64,000 bases of DNA from the IMG/VR virus record IMGVR_UViG_3300029286_000009, positions 124,001 through 188,000 of that record. One strand, written 5' to 3'. Within the stretch, counting starts at the first letter, position 1. Each line of letters opens with the position of its first letter. Shown in pieces: positions 1 to 20,872 of this stretch. The translations under genes were made by a program, and so were the position numbers. A model generated the notes under the pieces. That model had not been told where the DNA came from and did not search any database. It saw only the letters and a list, made by a program, of their open reading frames with translations.

Positions 1-94
1 TATGGAGCACCTGGTAGGGGCACAACCGGGAACCTGCCTCTAGTCTAAGGGGCGCGCTTAGGGTGGGGCAGCCACCAATAACAGGAGGTGCCCA
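1..94 (+). promoter_or_regulatory. Structured 5' leader (copy A, truncated by window edge) upstream of peptide ORF 95
   Basis: CTGCCTC(34-40)/GGGGCAG(65-71) stem with inner TCTAAG/CTTAGG; GCACCT(7-12) can pair with AGGTGC(86-91), masking SD GGAGG(84-88); same layout as 19373-19502. Confidence 0.6.
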
Positions 95-409
95 ATGGAC
101 TCCTACAACAGCATTGAAGGTTTGGCTCGAACCACAGTGCAGTGGTTCAAACGCCATCGTCGAGCAGTAGTGATCGTGGCAAAGATTCTGTATATTCTCT
201 ATAGAATCTGTAGAATCTATATGTGCGACCCAGACTACTTGATGCGGAGGATGACAGACTCACACTCTGCCATCTGTAGCACCGCCGCCCTTAGCAAAAT
301 CACTTCTTCCATAGTCTCTTCTCCTTTACTTCCCAACAAGATAGGGGTTCCTATACTGGTCTGTTGTTTCTGGGGTAATGATACCTTGTCTCAAAAAGGA
401 ATCTCGTAG
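95..409 (+). CDS. Cationic-hydrophobic peptide, homolog of 19503-19607, with C-terminal extension
   Basis: SD GGAGG; WFKRHRRAVVIVAKILYILYR aligns with WLTRHRRMLLIVVKVILWLVYK. Confidence 0.55.
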   Translation: MDSYNSIEGLARTTVQWFKRHRRAVVIVAKILYILYRICRIYMCDPDYLMRRMTDSHSAICSTAALSKITSSIVSSPLLPNKIGVPILVCCFWGNDTLSQKGIS

Positions 410-595: not shown

Positions 596-622
596 TTTAA
601 TTTTCCTTTCTTTTACATTTTT

Positions 623-708
623 CAGCCAAACGGCGACGGGGAGTTGAACCCCGCCACCTCCGGGTATGAGCCGTTGGTCAGACCGCTTTACCGTTTAGCT
701 GCTCCGCC
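623..708 (-). tRNA. Degenerate tRNA-Met(CAT)-like element
   Basis: Minus strand: T arm CGGGG-TTCAACT-CCCCG, CGG-CTCATAC-CCG anticodon-like arm, fMet-like GGAGCAGC; D arm and acceptor non-canonical, no encoded CCA. Confidence 0.4.
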
Positions 709-1021
709 CTCCTCAGGCTGGCCGGGACCGCGGGGAAAACAGAAACCAAATTTTTTGTTTTGCTGGCGACAATTGGAGTTGGCCACCAGCAGTTTGAAAG
801 GAGACGAAAGAGATAAGTCAAGAACTGGAAGAGGTTTGTGAGACAACCCTCATGTATGTGCTATCTTGATTATCCCGAATATTCATTAAATATACCTTAT
901 TGGGGTAGTGGGACTACCAATAAAGGCATATTAGAAAGGGTACATGCGTAATTAACTTAGGTAGGGGCCTCTACATAAGAGACTCCTACTCTTTCGGAAC
1001 GTCTTTTTCTAGGATGATTAG

Positions 1022-1312
1022 TTACTGCATAAACTGAAGATTGACAGTCATCTGGGGTTCTTCTCCATTGTGTTTTTTAGCTTCCATGTCTGCTCCTTGC
1101 TGGATTCCGACTAGGAAGATTGATTGCATCGCCAAGGCCAGCGGAATATCAAGTTTAGTAGTTAACTCAAGTGCACGTCTGGCAAGATATTCTGCCCACC
1201 GCATTCCTTCTTGGTCTAGAAGGTTCTGGGCGTTTTTCCTGGTTTCAACGAAACTCTCATTCTTCAGTTTTTTTTCCAGTGTCATAATATCGTTAATTGT
1301 GAATTTTGGCAC
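1022..1312 (-). CDS. hypothetical protein
   Basis: 96 aa ORF, SD GGAGG upstream. Confidence 0.6.
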   Translation of the reverse strand: MPKFTINDIMTLEKKLKNESFVETRKNAQNLLDQEGMRWAEYLARRALELTTKLDIPLALAMQSIFLVGIQQGADMEAKKHNGEEPQMTVNLQFMQ

Positions 1313-7509: not shown

Positions 7510-7700
7510 TTGGTGCGCAAATCCTTTCTAACTGGGATCGAATCGTTTACTAACATAAAGAACGTGTTTTCGAGTTTGTCATTAAACAAACAAAACTCAA
7601 ATATTGTGCCTATTGGTTGATTCTGTGCCCACACATTTTCCCGGCTCACTGGAATACCGTCTCCTTGCTCAATAGGTAAAATTAATACGGAATTATGCAC
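7488..7700 (-). CDS. hypothetical protein
   Basis: 70 aa ORF. Confidence 0.4.
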   Translation of the reverse strand: MHNSVLILPIEQGDGIPVSRENVWAQNQPIGTIFEFCLFNDKLENTFFMLVNDSIPVRKDLRTKWLHYTS

Positions 7701-7760
7701 TTGGCAAAATCACATCTTAAGCTTATAATTCCACAGTTTTCTTGCGCTGGGGTGACCTGC

Positions 7761-13874: not shown

Positions 13875-16082
13875 TTAATTTGCCTTCTCCTTGGTGCCGC
13901 TGAGGTATCTGTCAATTTCCTCCACCAACACACGATTGATAAGTTTACGGTTAGGCGATTTGGGCAATGAAGATTTATCCATTACTTCATTCAGTGCTTT
14001 GTCTTCCTTTTCCGCCCACTCGATTAGTTCCTCATACTTCCAAGCACCATTACGAATAGCGAGTAATTCTTCTGCGTCAGGGCGTCGTACGATTACGCCT
14101 TTACCTTCTAGTATTTCTCGTGCCATACGCATGAGACGAACAAGGTGAAGGGCGTGTTTAGAGTTCCCATGAATCGCAATTTTACCTTTTCTTCTGGTGA
14201 TAAGAACTTCGTTTGGAACCGTAAAACACACAACATGTCCATTTTTAACCCTGACAGGATGAATGTGTTGAGACTTACTCAAGTATGCACAGGTTCTAGT
14301 TTTTCCGATATATACCTGATACATTGCACAGTTGCCAAATTCTCTTGGTTTACGATCATAATAGTAAGGGCCCCATACTTGTGATACAATTCCGGCTTGT
14401 AAACACATTATCTGGACATCATCAGCTAGCCTCTTCAGGCTTGTATAGTATATACTACTAAATTTTCGGTATGTGCCGTCTCCGCCAATTAATCCTTCTA
14501 GCATCAATCTAGCTTGTCTTTCGTTAAGTTTGTCTTTAAAATGTGGGAGATGTTTGTTTTTTGCTTTGCCACACAAACCATATATCTCATCAGCAAGTTG
14601 GGCAGAGAATGAGTAAACACATTCTTTTGTAATTCTGCCTGACTTTAGTGTACGCTCATAATAGTATCGCTTCGCACCGTAACATTCTCTCAGATTTTCT
14701 AACCAAGGAATAAGGGGACTAGCAGGGTGTTGCGATATATTTAAAGACTTTGCTTTGTTTTTATAGAAAATTATAGACCCTTCGGCAATATATACACCAA
14801 TCAGCCTAAGTTTTTCGTTAGGTATCGGGTAATCTTCTCTGGGATTACAAGTTAATCTTGCATGAAAAGATCCGTAACGAGATTTTTCTATCTTGTCTAC
14901 CGATATTAGTGCCCAATCTGCCTGCTCTGGGTTGTATTTGATAGTAAAGTTATTGGATTTTTGTCGGTGGGTTCTGGTTACAAGTAATCTATGGTTGCTT
15001 GTCACAACACAGTTAGATTGTTGCATCCTTATCTCATATAGGAACCCAGAAGCTCTGTATGAATCTCGACCCAAGAAATGTTGATACTCTAAATTTCCTT
15101 CAGTGTTGATCGTTCCTAATTTATCGTTCTCAGATATTTCTCTGTATAACTTCCAACCTGTATCAGTCAAAAACTCGGTATCACTTAGATAACAGTCAAA
15201 TCCGTGCTTTTGTTCAAGTTCTGATCTTTTCGGATTACGTTCCTGCTTCCACTTTTCGTAATGATTCCAATCTTCCAGGTGGTTCTTGTAAGCAGAATAT
15301 CTTTGAAGATAGTTTACGAAGTCAGAATCGAATCCCAGCGTTCTGTTCGCCGCCCGTTCTAACACATCCTTGAGATGGTCTACATTAGCCTCTATGTAGA
15401 GTTGTTCAGTCACTACATTAACCATACGAACCATTTCTGGTCCTAGCTGTATCTTGGTGTCTTCCGTCAAGTGGGTCTGATCAACTAACCATTCACCTAC
15501 TTGAAGTTCTATCATTTTCAGAGCACCGTGTAGTTGGTCCTTCGGGAATTTCATTCCTTCTATCCCGTAGTCTGCACGCGTAGGATAGGTGGGCGGGTTG
15601 CTAGTCCAGCGATGATGGTTGCGCATCCTTTTGAGCTGTTGCATAGCGTACCCACTAAAGCGGTGTTTAAGTAGCTTACTGAGGAATGCATCCTTGATTT
15701 TGGAGAACCTTTCCATAAGTGGGTGTGCATAGATGATTGAATCTTCAGGAACGAACAACAGTTCCAGCATATTCGGGTTTCCATCTGCTGCTAATCCGAT
15801 CATTTTTTTAAGTGACCAGATTACAATATCACTATCGGGAACCAAGTCTCTCCTTGTTCCTTTAGCAACCAGAGGAATTACTTCTTTGCTATCAGTTTGC
15901 TCGAAGTTACCAAACCCGTAGAAATATTCTTTAGGAGGAATAGTCGCCCCCCGGTAATCCATATCTGATTCGGGTGTATTTGTCCCGTAAAGTTGAGATC
16001 CTGCGGGGGTAAGATAGACAATGTTTGAACCTATCCAGTTTTTTATGTTTATCAAGCTTCCTTCCCTTCTATAATTCTCCAT
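13875..16082 (-). CDS. Predicted nucleotidyltransferase (Pol-beta superfamily, Nuc-transf/COG3541-like), intein-interrupted
   Basis: GSQLYGTNTPESDMDYRG motif; NPNMLELLF; after intein removal KHGFD|SKHALHLVRLMRMAREIL. Confidence 0.85.
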   Translation of the reverse strand: MENYRREGSLINIKNWIGSNIVYLTPAGSQLYGTNTPESDMDYRGATIPPKEYFYGFGNFEQTDSKEVIPLVAKGTRRDLVPDSDIVIWSLKKMIGLAADGNPNMLELLFVPEDSIIYAHPLMERFSKIKDAFLSKLLKHRFSGYAMQQLKRMRNHHRWTSNPPTYPTRADYGIEGMKFPKDQLHGALKMIELQVGEWLVDQTHLTEDTKIQLGPEMVRMVNVVTEQLYIEANVDHLKDVLERAANRTLGFDSDFVNYLQRYSAYKNHLEDWNHYEKWKQERNPKRSELEQKHGFDCYLSDTEFLTDTGWKLYREISENDKLGTINTEGNLEYQHFLGRDSYRASGFLYEIRMQQSNCVVTSNHRLLVTRTHRQKSNNFTIKYNPEQADWALISVDKIEKSRYGSFHARLTCNPREDYPIPNEKLRLIGVYIAEGSIIFYKNKAKSLNISQHPASPLIPWLENLRECYGAKRYYYERTLKSGRITKECVYSFSAQLADEIYGLCGKAKNKHLPHFKDKLNERQARLMLEGLIGGDGTYRKFSSIYYTSLKRLADDVQIMCLQAGIVSQVWGPYYYDRKPREFGNCAMYQVYIGKTRTCAYLSKSQHIHPVRVKNGHVVCFTVPNEVLITRRKGKIAIHGNSKHALHLVRLMRMAREILEGKGVIVRRPDAEELLAIRNGAWKYEELIEWAEKEDKALNEVMDKSSLPKSPNRKLINRVLVEEIDRYLSGTKEKAN
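14163..15194 (-). mobile_element. Intein (344 aa) with LAGLIDADG homing endonuclease
   Basis: Starts CYLSDTEFLT..GW, ends VCFTVPNEVLITRRKGKIAIHGN with +1 Ser; motifs LIGVYIAEGS and LEGLIGGDG. Confidence 0.9.
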
Positions 16083-18928: not shown

Positions 18929-19297
18929 TTAACTTATTTGCCTTTTTCCTCGACCCACTCCCTCCCCCACTTGGGTGTTTGCTACTTGCCATAGCTTGCG
19001 GAGTGGGGACAGGGGAGATACGTTAATATATGCCTGGTGCTCTTTGTGAATATACACATGAAGGCAGTATAGGGGCAGCCAACCTTTATCTTCGCGAAGC
19101 GTTAGACTTATTTGCCCACCCCCATCTTTACCTGTCAGATATTCGCCGGTACACTGCCACGAGATAACTTTGAAATTAGTGAGTGAAATTATCATCTCAA
19201 CAATTTCGCGTTCATCCTTGGGGCACCATACGAACACTATCCAATACATAATATAAGCTGTTGTTATCAATAATATTATTGCTAGTTCCATTTGCAT
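18929..19297 (-). CDS. Membrane-anchored hypothetical protein
   Basis: N-terminal TM helix. Confidence 0.55.
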   Translation of the reverse strand: MQMELAIILLITTAYIMYWIVFVWCPKDEREIVEMIISLTNFKVISWQCTGEYLTGKDGGGQISLTLREDKGWLPLYCLHVYIHKEHQAYINVSPLSPLRKLWQVANTQVGEGVGRGKRQIS

Positions 19298-19340
19298 TAT
19301 CCTTTTCTTTTACGGAACTATTCACCTGCCAAATAACGCA

Positions 19341-19369
19341 TTGACAAGAGCGAGGGCTATCCGTACACT
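19341..19369 (+). promoter_or_regulatory. Sigma70-type promoter, antisense to the arm
   Basis: TTGACA(19341-46)-17 nt-TACACT(19364-69). Confidence 0.75.
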
Positions 19370-19372
19370 ATC

Positions 19373-19502
19373 GGAGGCCGGTTAATCTGGGTGTTCACGG
19401 GCCCAGAACGCCTCTGGGCCAAAGGTAAGAACACAGCCGGTCAACCTGCCCCTGTGGGGGCGACCATAAGGGGGCAGGATACATTAATCCCGAGGTAGTA
19501 TT
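19373..19502 (+). promoter_or_regulatory. Highly structured 5' leader (copy B)
   Basis: Stems GCCGG/CCGGT, GTGTTC/GAACAC, GGCCCAGA/TCTGGGCC, CCTGCCCC/GGGGCAGG; SD GAGGT(19492-96) can pair with ACCTC(19510-14). Confidence 0.7.
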
Positions 19503-19607
19503 ATGAGAAACCTCAAATTCCTTCGGCGGTGGCTTACACGTCATCGTCGAATGCTCTTGATTGTAGTGAAGGTAATCTTATGGCTTGTCTATAAATACTG
19601 GATATAG
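19503..19607 (+). CDS. 34-aa cationic/hydrophobic peptide, type I toxin-like
   Basis: Read by hand: MRNLKFLRRWLTRHRRMLLIVVKVILWLVYKYWI*; promoter, SD and a homolog at 95. Confidence 0.65.
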   Translation: MRNLKFLRRWLTRHRRMLLIVVKVILWLVYKYWI

Positions 19608-19618
19608 TTTAATTTGTT

Positions 19619-19656
19619 AGGAGGCTCTAGCAGTGTCCCCCTGCTATCCTCCATTT
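19619..19656 (+). terminator. 3' hairpin downstream of peptide ORF
   Basis: GGAGG..TAGCAG/CTGCTA..CCTCC. Confidence 0.45.
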
Positions 19657-19664
19657 CTACTCCA

Positions 19665-19853
19665 CTATTCTTTTTTCTTCGTACCTTCTACTTCTCTGCA
19701 CCAGTAATCGATTTGGTCCATCGCCCACTCGTGGAGATACTCTTCCTCCACGTAAGTGTGCTTGTCTCCTACTTCCTCTAACTCCTCATCATTTATATCA
19801 ACAACCTCTGAGTACAATTTGATTCCTAATTCTATATTGAATTCGAATTTCAC
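19665..19853 (-). CDS. Acidic hypothetical protein
   Basis: GTG start after GGAG; VKFEFNIELG... Confidence 0.5.
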   Translation of the reverse strand: MKFEFNIELGIKLYSEVVDINDEELEEVGDKHTYVEEEYLHEWAMDQIDYWCREVEGTKKKE

Positions 19854-20119: not shown

Positions 20120-20872
20120 TCAGAATGCACAACTTTCCCAGTTTAACAGTTGGTCAAACCGTTTTAGTATCAAACCCGGGTTCTCTTTCCACTCCTTTTC
20201 CCAGATAGTATAAACACTATATCCCAGGTCTTTGATTAACTTTATCCTTTCTTCATCTCTATTCCAAATGTTTTGAGCTGTAAGACCATGATGGATAATG
20301 TCAGATGCACTGTATGTCTCTGGATTAGCATGCCAGAAATTACCATAGAACTCTATTACTACCCCATCTTTTCGAATGATACCATCTGGAAATAACCATG
20401 ATGCTTTCCCATAACTAATCGTCTCAGTAGTCACATTGTCATGGACTTCCTGTAACTCTTTAATAAATTTCTGTTCAATACGACTCCTGTTACAAGAAAA
20501 ATCATTTTTGGTAATCTTTCCTTCTCGCCATGACCTCCTCATATGTTCGCGACGGGCTTCACGTTGCTCTGGGTTATCTCTATACCATTGTTTGACACGA
20601 GCAGACTGTTCCTTTTTAAATCCCTCTCTCCTGGGCTTTGAGACTGCTTTAATAACCTTTTCTCTATATTCTTCATCCTTCCACAAATCTTTACTAATTT
20701 GTCTTAGCTTCTCCTTAGTTTGTGCAATTGTTTCTGGGTTATGTGTCTTTCCATAGAATGAGTTGTTCTCTCCGGTTCTATCTCTGTGGTGGTTACAAAA
20801 TCCAGTTTTATTCATATCTTGGAGAAGCTTCCCGCAAGTTTTGCACCGTTTGTTTAATTTAGGTTTTCCCAT
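20120..20872 (-). CDS. Homing-type endonuclease: NUMOD3-like repeat plus Vsr/EDxHD-like PD-(D/E)XK domain
   Basis: GENNSFYGKTH; FPDG..VVIEFYGNFWHANP..WNRDEER..LGYSVYTIWEKEW. Confidence 0.75.
   Translation of the reverse strand: MGKPKLNKRCKTCGKLLQDMNKTGFCNHHRDRTGENNSFYGKTHNPETIAQTKEKLRQISKDLWKDEEYREKVIKAVSKPRREGFKKEQSARVKQWYRDNPEQREARREHMRRSWREGKITKNDFSCNRSRIEQKFIKELQEVHDNVTTETISYGKASWLFPDGIIRKDGVVIEFYGNFWHANPETYSASDIIHHGLTAQNIWNRDEERIKLIKDLGYSVYTIWEKEWKENPGLILKRFDQLLNWESCAF

Follow-up and report, generated by a model that had tools for sequence, protein, structure and literature searches.

The window analysed here is a stretch of 64,000 nucleotides, bases 124001-188000 of a 259,732-bp IMG/VR virus record with an estimated completeness of 96%. 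The record belongs to a freshwater jumbo phage with a genome GC content of 42%; the identical sequence also appears in ENA, on a contig of 320 kb, and in several metagenome runs from lakes and freshwater, and microdiversity is absent among the identical contigs. RNA-repair and nucleotide-metabolism genes, typical of large phages, are encoded by this phage. Between about 88 and 162 kb of the genome, a span of about 70 kb, the genes lie mostly on the minus strand, and within this block a small cassette forms a plus-strand island. It is composed of a promoter-like block, a folded leader and the gene of a 34-amino-acid peptide, followed by a GC-rich hairpin. This cassette is called copy 2, its counterpart at the start of the window copy 1, and positions refer to the window unless the genome is named. 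The features in and around copy 2 are the following:

18929-19297, minus strand: membrane-protein ORF, mostly inside the 838-bp block
18997-19834: accessory block of 838 bp, missing in a closely related strain
19312-19325, plus strand: motif A, ACGGAACTATTCAC, opening a 43-nt block that is 84% identical between the copies
19341-19369, plus strand: sigma-70-like site TTGACA-17-TACACT, score 10/12, with a predicted start at about 19375-19377
19376-19442, plus strand: 5' domain of the leader (P1, P2, P3, loop L3 and joint J3/2)
19376-19383/19435-19442, plus strand: helix P1, in copy 2 only, its partner missing in copy 1
19391-19396/19429-19434, plus strand: helix P2, GUGUUC/GAACAC (GUGUCC/GGGCAC in copy 1)
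19400-19407/19413-19420, plus strand: helix P3, four pairs common to both copies, two of them changed on both sides
19408-19412, plus strand: loop L3, ACGCC, with CGCCU conserved
19445-19478, plus strand: 3' domain of the leader, P4, with a conserved outer stem CCUGCCCCU/GGGGGCAGG and an inner stem GUGG/CCAU
19458-19463, plus strand: loop L4, GGGCGA, complementary to L3
19490-19526, plus strand: start hairpin, with the Shine-Dalgarno (SD) sequence GAGG (19492-19495) paired with CUUCGG (19521-19526) and the AUG (19503) in the inner stem
19503-19607, plus strand: gene of the 34-aa peptide, MRNLKFLRRWLTRHRRMLLIVVKVILWLVYKYWI
19620-19652: GC-rich hairpin between the convergent peptide and DUF7167 genes
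19665-19853, minus strand: DUF7167 gene, 62 aa, GTG start at 19853 (25.4 bits against a cut-off of 24.4)

The initial annotation of this locus had pointed to a homologous cassette at 1-409. A diverged second copy is indeed present there, starting 74 bases before the window, and profile searches of the whole 259.7-kb record, including nhmmer, recovered these two copies only. The features of copy 1 are:

1-409, from 74 bases before the window (genome 123926), plus strand: paralogous cassette, homologous to about window position 280
34-71, plus strand: P4, the 3' part of the leader
84-88, plus strand: SD sequence GGAGG
95-409, plus strand: ORF of 104 aa, of which residues 16-37 align with the 34-aa peptide
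about 246-274: hairpin

The promoter block, the leader and the peptide are homologous between the copies, while the flanking genes are not. Since the flanks are unrelated, the module is discrete, and by their sequences the two cassettes are true, old paralogues of it. The 104-aa ORF of copy 1 continues across the hairpin until it overlaps an 89-aa minus-strand ORF (326-595) at the latter's 3' end. Copy 1, with this long ORF, the overlapping opposite ORF and neither a recognisable -10 nor a P1, may be decaying or working differently. All evidence of conservation comes from these two sequences of the same genome, with thin support from covariation, and in the alignments MAFFT shifts one arm of P4, 3' or 5', out of register.

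A 34-aa ORF with a cationic N-terminus and one transmembrane helix had been described, and this ORF is present and conserved in the paralogue. Residues 2-16 hold seven R/K and one H; the C-terminal 18 residues are hydrophobic, with a 15-residue Kyte-Doolittle mean that peaks at 2.15, and are predicted to form a single transmembrane helix. The peptides of the two copies match at E 5e-6 in a pairwise BLASTP, with 11/23 aligned residues identical, and share the motif W-[FL]-x-RHRR followed by the hydrophobic helix with a conserved lysine. Five of these 11 residues are encoded by synonymous codons that differ between the copies, including CTG versus TTA, which argues for selection on the protein; in addition, replacements are conservative and the hydrophobic helix is kept. 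Predicted from its sequence, the product is a small hydrophobic membrane peptide, as type I toxins are. Neither peptide matched a family in Pfam (E<=1), PHROGs, NCBIfam or PADLOC.

The best-conserved part of the cassette is the 43-nt promoter block, which combines motif A (ACGGAAyTATTCAC) with TTGACAA. In copy 2, TTGACA (19341-19346) and TACACT (19364-19369) are separated by a spacer of 17. The near-consensus promoter noted earlier is thus present, but sites with a score of at least 10/12 occur 65 times genome-wide, many of them within genes, so that the match alone is at chance level. Moreover, its -10 is not conserved: copy 1 keeps TTGACAA and has no recognisable -10. On the sigma-70-like consensus, the site at 19341-19369 may act as a promoter for plus-strand transcription. 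Host inference via the NMT1-like protein of the phage gave no match in a search of genome contigs.

Motif A, in the form ACGGAAyTATkCwC, occurs five times in the genome, each time upstream of a -35-like hexamer:

Genome 40822: ahead of tiny ORFs and the gene of a SocA/Panacea antitoxin-domain protein
Genome 123926: copy 1
Window 7687-7735: facing the end of a minus-strand gene
Window 19312-19325: copy 2
Genome 191783: upstream of about 280 nt without ORF

At three of these five sites, the -35 hexamer follows immediately and a good -10 is present; in both cassettes, TTGACA lies 15 nt further. Motif A may be bound by a shared regulator, or it may serve as an upstream promoter element; it could thus mark out a small regulon. 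A pattern of the promoter block found no match in IMG/VR.

With the promoter block as the most conserved part (84%), the RNA itself might be the product. The plus-strand transcript would then work as an antisense or interference RNA against minus-strand genes, as lambda OOP and P22 sar do, and the peptide would be incidental or secondary. The transcript does run against a gene block that is mostly on the minus strand over about 70 kb, the plus-strand ORF of copy 1 overlaps the 3' end of the 89-aa minus-strand ORF, and the motif-A promoters at window 7687 and genome 191783 oppose genes or precede ORF-free stretches. We nevertheless consider it unlikely that the RNA is the product: the peptide gene shows synonymous changes and conservative replacements, a sign of selection at the protein level, and an SD at the right distance, together with an anti-SD, is kept in both copies.

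Between promoter and peptide gene, a folded leader of about 130 nt is present, as had been reported, and it is GC-rich. Its "four nested stems" are in fact three nested helices (P1 outermost, then P2 and P3), and the hairpin P4, built in two tiers, stands apart downstream of them. The segment 19373-19510 folds with -56.5 kcal/mol on the plus strand (z -2.64), compared with -48.0 for its reverse complement (z -1.79). The helices shared by the copies contain two G-U pairs in copy 2 and three in copy 1, which are A-C mismatches on the minus strand, in agreement with the earlier observation that the G-U pairs favour the plus strand. The GC content of the leaders is 64-65%, versus 42% for the genome, which corresponds to percentile 99.97 among 100-nt windows and ranks both leaders in the top five GC-rich islands.

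The fold is partly maintained in copy 1. There, P4 has an outer stem CUGCCUC/GGGGCAG, an inner stem UCUAAG/CUUAGG and a loop GGGCGCG; the inner stem differs wholly in sequence between the copies, and its pairing is kept. The blocks conserved across the copies are CGCCU, GGUAR (GGUAA in the J3/2 joint of copy 2), the joint CACARCCGG..AACCUGCC, GGGCG and GGGGCAG. In both copies, CGCCU of L3 could pair with GGGCG of L4 over 5-6 bases, so that the loops may form a kissing contact of 5-6 bp. RNAalifold, applied to an unbiased MAFFT alignment, recovered P2 and P3 with a score of -17.9 versus 8.4 +/- 2.7 for column shuffles (z -3.55). On the core of copy 1, the shared fold reaches -31.9 kcal/mol, 7.6 above its own minimum of -39.5. 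An upstream ORF within the leader (GTG at 19391, 35 aa) was considered and rejected, as it is not conserved in copy 1.

A leader of this kind could be a sensor, that is, a riboswitch, a thermometer or a protein-binding operator, in which a ligand or factor acts on the kissing-loop fold to free the SD. The conserved blocks, kept in copies that have otherwise diverged, are in line with this, as are the two hairpins with complementary loops. Copy 1 offers two partners for GGGCAC, the 5' GUGUCC and a GUGCCC located between SD and AUG, an alternative without counterpart in copy 2. The sequence AGCCGGUCAACCUGCC offers a further lead, as it resembles a B12 box. This resemblance was rejected, as Rfam 15 gives no match over either leader, the cobalamin models included: there is no match at the gathering score in the window and none at E<=10 on the plus strand of either leader. 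The initial annotation is supported in that the leader matches no known riboswitch. The comparison is also confined to two sequences, the gene context points to no ligand, and the exact 22-base core of the leader found nothing else in viral or JGI metagenome contigs. From the latter it retrieved 38 stretches, of which the real ones are the two from the phage's own record; two exact DNA patterns of the leader core gave chance matches only, or none, in viral contigs. A sensor function appears improbable on this evidence. The same holds for its boldest form, a new cis-regulatory RNA built on the CGCCU-GGGCG kiss and the CACARCCGG joint, which would sense a signal and release the translation of a new family of membrane-depolarising peptides; the phage would then carry a toxin that is switched by the fold of an RNA and not by an antitoxin. 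The RNA switch of the initial annotation is a conjecture.

Downstream of P4, the start of the peptide gene is predicted to fold into a hairpin. It had been proposed that the SD is sequestered by ACCTC. In copy 2, the SD is buried either way, with an unpaired probability below 0.02, but its partner in the minimum-energy structure is CUUCGG, which forms codons 7-8. In copy 1, AGGAG pairs with CUCCU of codons 2-4 and the SD is partly buried (0.3-0.5 unpaired). Both copies thus carry an anti-SD within codons 2-9 and have the SD at the right distance. The local fold of the start region in copy 2 (-12.8 kcal/mol) lies at the 12th percentile of 276 phage genes and that of copy 1 at the 17th, so that neither is extreme.

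The 3' hairpin that had been described is present at 19620-19652. In copy 2, it folds with -17.9 on the plus strand versus -21.2 on the minus strand; the plus strand has a loose U-rich tract, the minus strand lacks a U-tail, and a terminator scan called nothing there. The hairpins of both copies fold better on the minus strand and lack a minus-strand U-tail. They resemble elements between convergent genes more than components of a fold-back switch. The hok-like pairing suggested between the 5' GGAGG and the 3' CCUCC is a complement of 5 nt that is not conserved, the 5' GGAGG being missing in copy 1.

The strand preference of these hairpins would also suit a feature of the minus strand, namely a hairpin and a restart promoter between operons, with the plus-strand ORF as a chance reading. 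A minus-strand TTGTCA-18-AATAAT in copy 1 shares the -35 heptamer. This explanation is very improbable, as the leader folds better on the plus strand, with its G-U pairs, the peptide is conserved, and the corresponding minus-strand spacing in copy 2 is 19.

The antisense side of the cassette bears directly on its classification. According to PMC8309996, type I antitoxins are antisense RNAs that are encoded in cis or in trans. At a true type I toxin-antitoxin (TA) locus, a dedicated small antisense RNA with its own promoter would block translation or trigger decay of the toxin mRNA. In size and shape, the peptide fits a type I toxin, the SD is predicted to be buried, the 5' end lies in a predicted helix (P1, copy 2 only) and two copies exist. 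The prophage systems bsrG/SR4 and txpA/RatA have a convergent layout as well. Against such a locus, promoter scans found no minus-strand promoter-like site inside either cassette. The CATAAT that had been put forward as the -10 of an antitoxin is CATTGG in the paralogue and is not accompanied by a -35. Moreover, the 5'-3' pairing is not conserved, no small antisense unit bounded by a terminator is found, and the convergent partners are unrelated protein genes. A true type I locus therefore seems a poor prospect. The proposed type I TA family stands as far as the peptide, the position of the cassette as a separate unit opposing its minus-strand neighbours, the structured leader, the SD predicted to be buried and the two copies are concerned, but no antisense antitoxin was found; for this reason the cassette is not to be filed as a type I TA family. 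As neither 3' hairpin has a minus-strand U-tail, antisense read-through is plausible. RNA arising in this way is a possible opposing RNA and would not count as a dedicated antitoxin.

The surroundings of copy 2 indicate how the cassette is distributed. In a related strain from another sample (runs X7 and X8), contigs that are 95-99% identical to the flanks join position 18996 to 19835 in frame. The missing 838 bp, a block of three genes, take in cassette 2 and the larger parts of the membrane-protein ORF and the DUF7167 gene. Copy 2 is accessory, either by gain in this phage or by loss from the related strain. A free-standing gene resembling a homing endonuclease is located at 20120-20872, just beyond the block.

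BLAST against deposited phages found no match for the cassette or the surrounding 10 kb, and the flanking proteins had no relatives in viral contigs. The 104-aa protein retrieved only itself among 5.8 billion protein clusters, as did the two-peptide profile among 1.84 billion representatives. Patterns of the peptide had no match in viral contigs and GTDB genome contigs, and the ESM Atlas yielded no usable match. More distant relatives of the phage, recognised by their NMT1-like protein (64-73% identity), lack the cassette within 10 kb. As far as these tools see, the cassette family is private to this phage lineage within the collections searched.

Taken as a whole, the cassette is real, conserved and beyond chance, and its reading as a TA system with an RNA switch goes beyond the evidence. 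The explanation we favour, with a probability of roughly 45%, is an accessory and self-contained gene for a small membrane-acting peptide, which is held off by the structure of its own mRNA and has no dedicated antitoxin. The sequence features and their conservation between the copies are direct observations; from these we infer transcription, translational repression, membrane insertion and toxicity. Motif A and the TTGACA region would drive a plus-strand transcript against the surrounding minus-strand genes. This transcript would open with the compact, GC-rich leader, in which the hairpin domains P2/P3 and P4 kiss through their loops CGCCU and GGGCG, and the next hairpin would bury the SD and the start codon. 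The mRNA would be stable, with poor translation before any refolding, processing or binding takes place. The peptide, its N-terminus facing the cytoplasm, would be an effector that acts on the membrane and is similar in kind to type I toxins, hok or PanT; depolarisation, exclusion and lysis timing are possible roles. Antisense control, if any, would come from read-through of the minus-strand operon across the hairpin, which is not a canonical terminator. Several points count against this explanation: the two sequences come from one genome, the shared fold lies above the minimum of copy 1 and its SD is partly buried, copy 1 lacks a recognisable -10 and P1 and has a long ORF, the start-region folds are not extreme, and sigma-70-like sites of this quality are common in the genome. 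In addition, neither relatives nor similarity to a toxin family were found in the collections searched.

If the peptide is toxic and gated by the leader, the cassette would be a toxin module without recognisable antitoxin in a jumbo phage of the lytic type. It would then represent a new structured RNA and small-protein family for a class known mainly from plasmids, chromosomes and prophages. The case consists of two paralogues in one genome, and its wider significance is unproven. More generally, GC-rich islands flag structured RNAs where a phage genome is AT-rich: here, three of the top five islands are candidates.

Several other features were observed in this genome. The most GC-rich island of all spans about 426 nt at window 600-1025 on the minus strand; it has no convincing ORF and folds with -135.7 kcal/mol (z -4.13). 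Its 3' part, at about 625-700, is tRNA-like, including an anticodon-like loop (CUCAUAC), an acceptor-like stem and a T arm, CGGGG-UUCAACU-CCCCG; no tRNA is called in the stretch by ARAGORN, and Rfam gives only a weak match to the tRNA-like mascRNA. RNA-repair genes are found in the phage as well as in its relatives; the latter also have Ro60/TROVE, a gene missing from the phage's own record. Because of these genes, a Y-RNA-like or other tRNA-mimic RNA is possible. Another GC-rich and ORF-free stretch of about 280 nt lies at about genome 191445-191735 (minus strand), downstream of a motif-A promoter and before a T-rich tract; it has no Rfam match and folds no better than shuffled sequences (z -0.67). 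Finally, a 735-aa ORF at window 13875-16082 (minus strand) joins an RlaP RNA-repair nucleotidyltransferase domain to a LAGLIDADG domain and may represent an intein or a fused homing endonuclease.

Among known systems, hok/sok of plasmid R1 and its chromosomal homologues share with the cassette a small peptide that has one transmembrane helix behind a basic N-terminus, an mRNA that is stable, folded and hides the SD (here by prediction), and several copies per replicon. Unlike hok, the cassette has no Hok_Gef match (Pfam, E<=1) and no overlapping frame like mok; its 5'-3' fold-back (fbi) pairing is not conserved, and no Sok-like antisense promoter is seen. The aapA/IsoA system of Helicobacter pylori also encodes a peptide of about 30 aa from an mRNA whose hairpins hide the SD. 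There, however, the 5' region is targeted by IsoA, a dedicated antisense RNA transcribed from a promoter of its own; no such RNA is seen in the cassettes, and the phage peptide shows no sequence similarity. In bsrG/SR4, txpA/RatA and yonT/SR6, carried by prophage elements of Bacillus subtilis, a small membrane toxin is likewise phage-borne and a convergent transcript overlaps the 3' end of its message; the convergent partners in the jumbo phage, by contrast, are protein genes (DUF7167 and the 89-aa ORF) and not a small RNA with promoter and terminator.

Known partners of Panacea antitoxins include PanT toxins in which a charged N-terminus is combined with transmembrane segments at the C-terminal end (PMC8832971). 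The phage itself encodes a Panacea-domain protein (PF13274, E 3.6e-18), and the promoter of this gene carries motif A. In contrast to PanAT, the gene (genome 41109-41567) is located about 100 kb away and not in the operon of the peptide. The predicted complex of this protein with the 34-aa peptide scored 0.01, which speaks neither for nor against binding. The SocA/Panacea gene is preceded by very short ORFs, one of them hydrophobic and 19 codons long, and is followed by a methyltransferase; it could belong to a PanAT-like module or be an orphan anti-defence antitoxin.

Two further comparisons come from aquatic organisms. msoT1/msoA1 of Microcystis aeruginosa is a freshwater candidate type I locus whose toxin is unlike the classical families; MsoT1 has 63 aa and two predicted helices, and a cis-encoded antisense RNA covers the 3' end (PMC12390103). 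MsoT1 has no similarity to the peptide of this phage. The conserved core of the Downstream-peptide/glutamine-II motif of cyanobacteria and cyanophages differs from that of the cassette leader, which no Rfam model matches; the general plan of a structured leader with a putative tertiary contact ahead of a short ORF, in an aquatic phage, is common to both. Set beside these systems, the cassette is type-I-toxin-like in several respects, a likeness that stops short of class membership.
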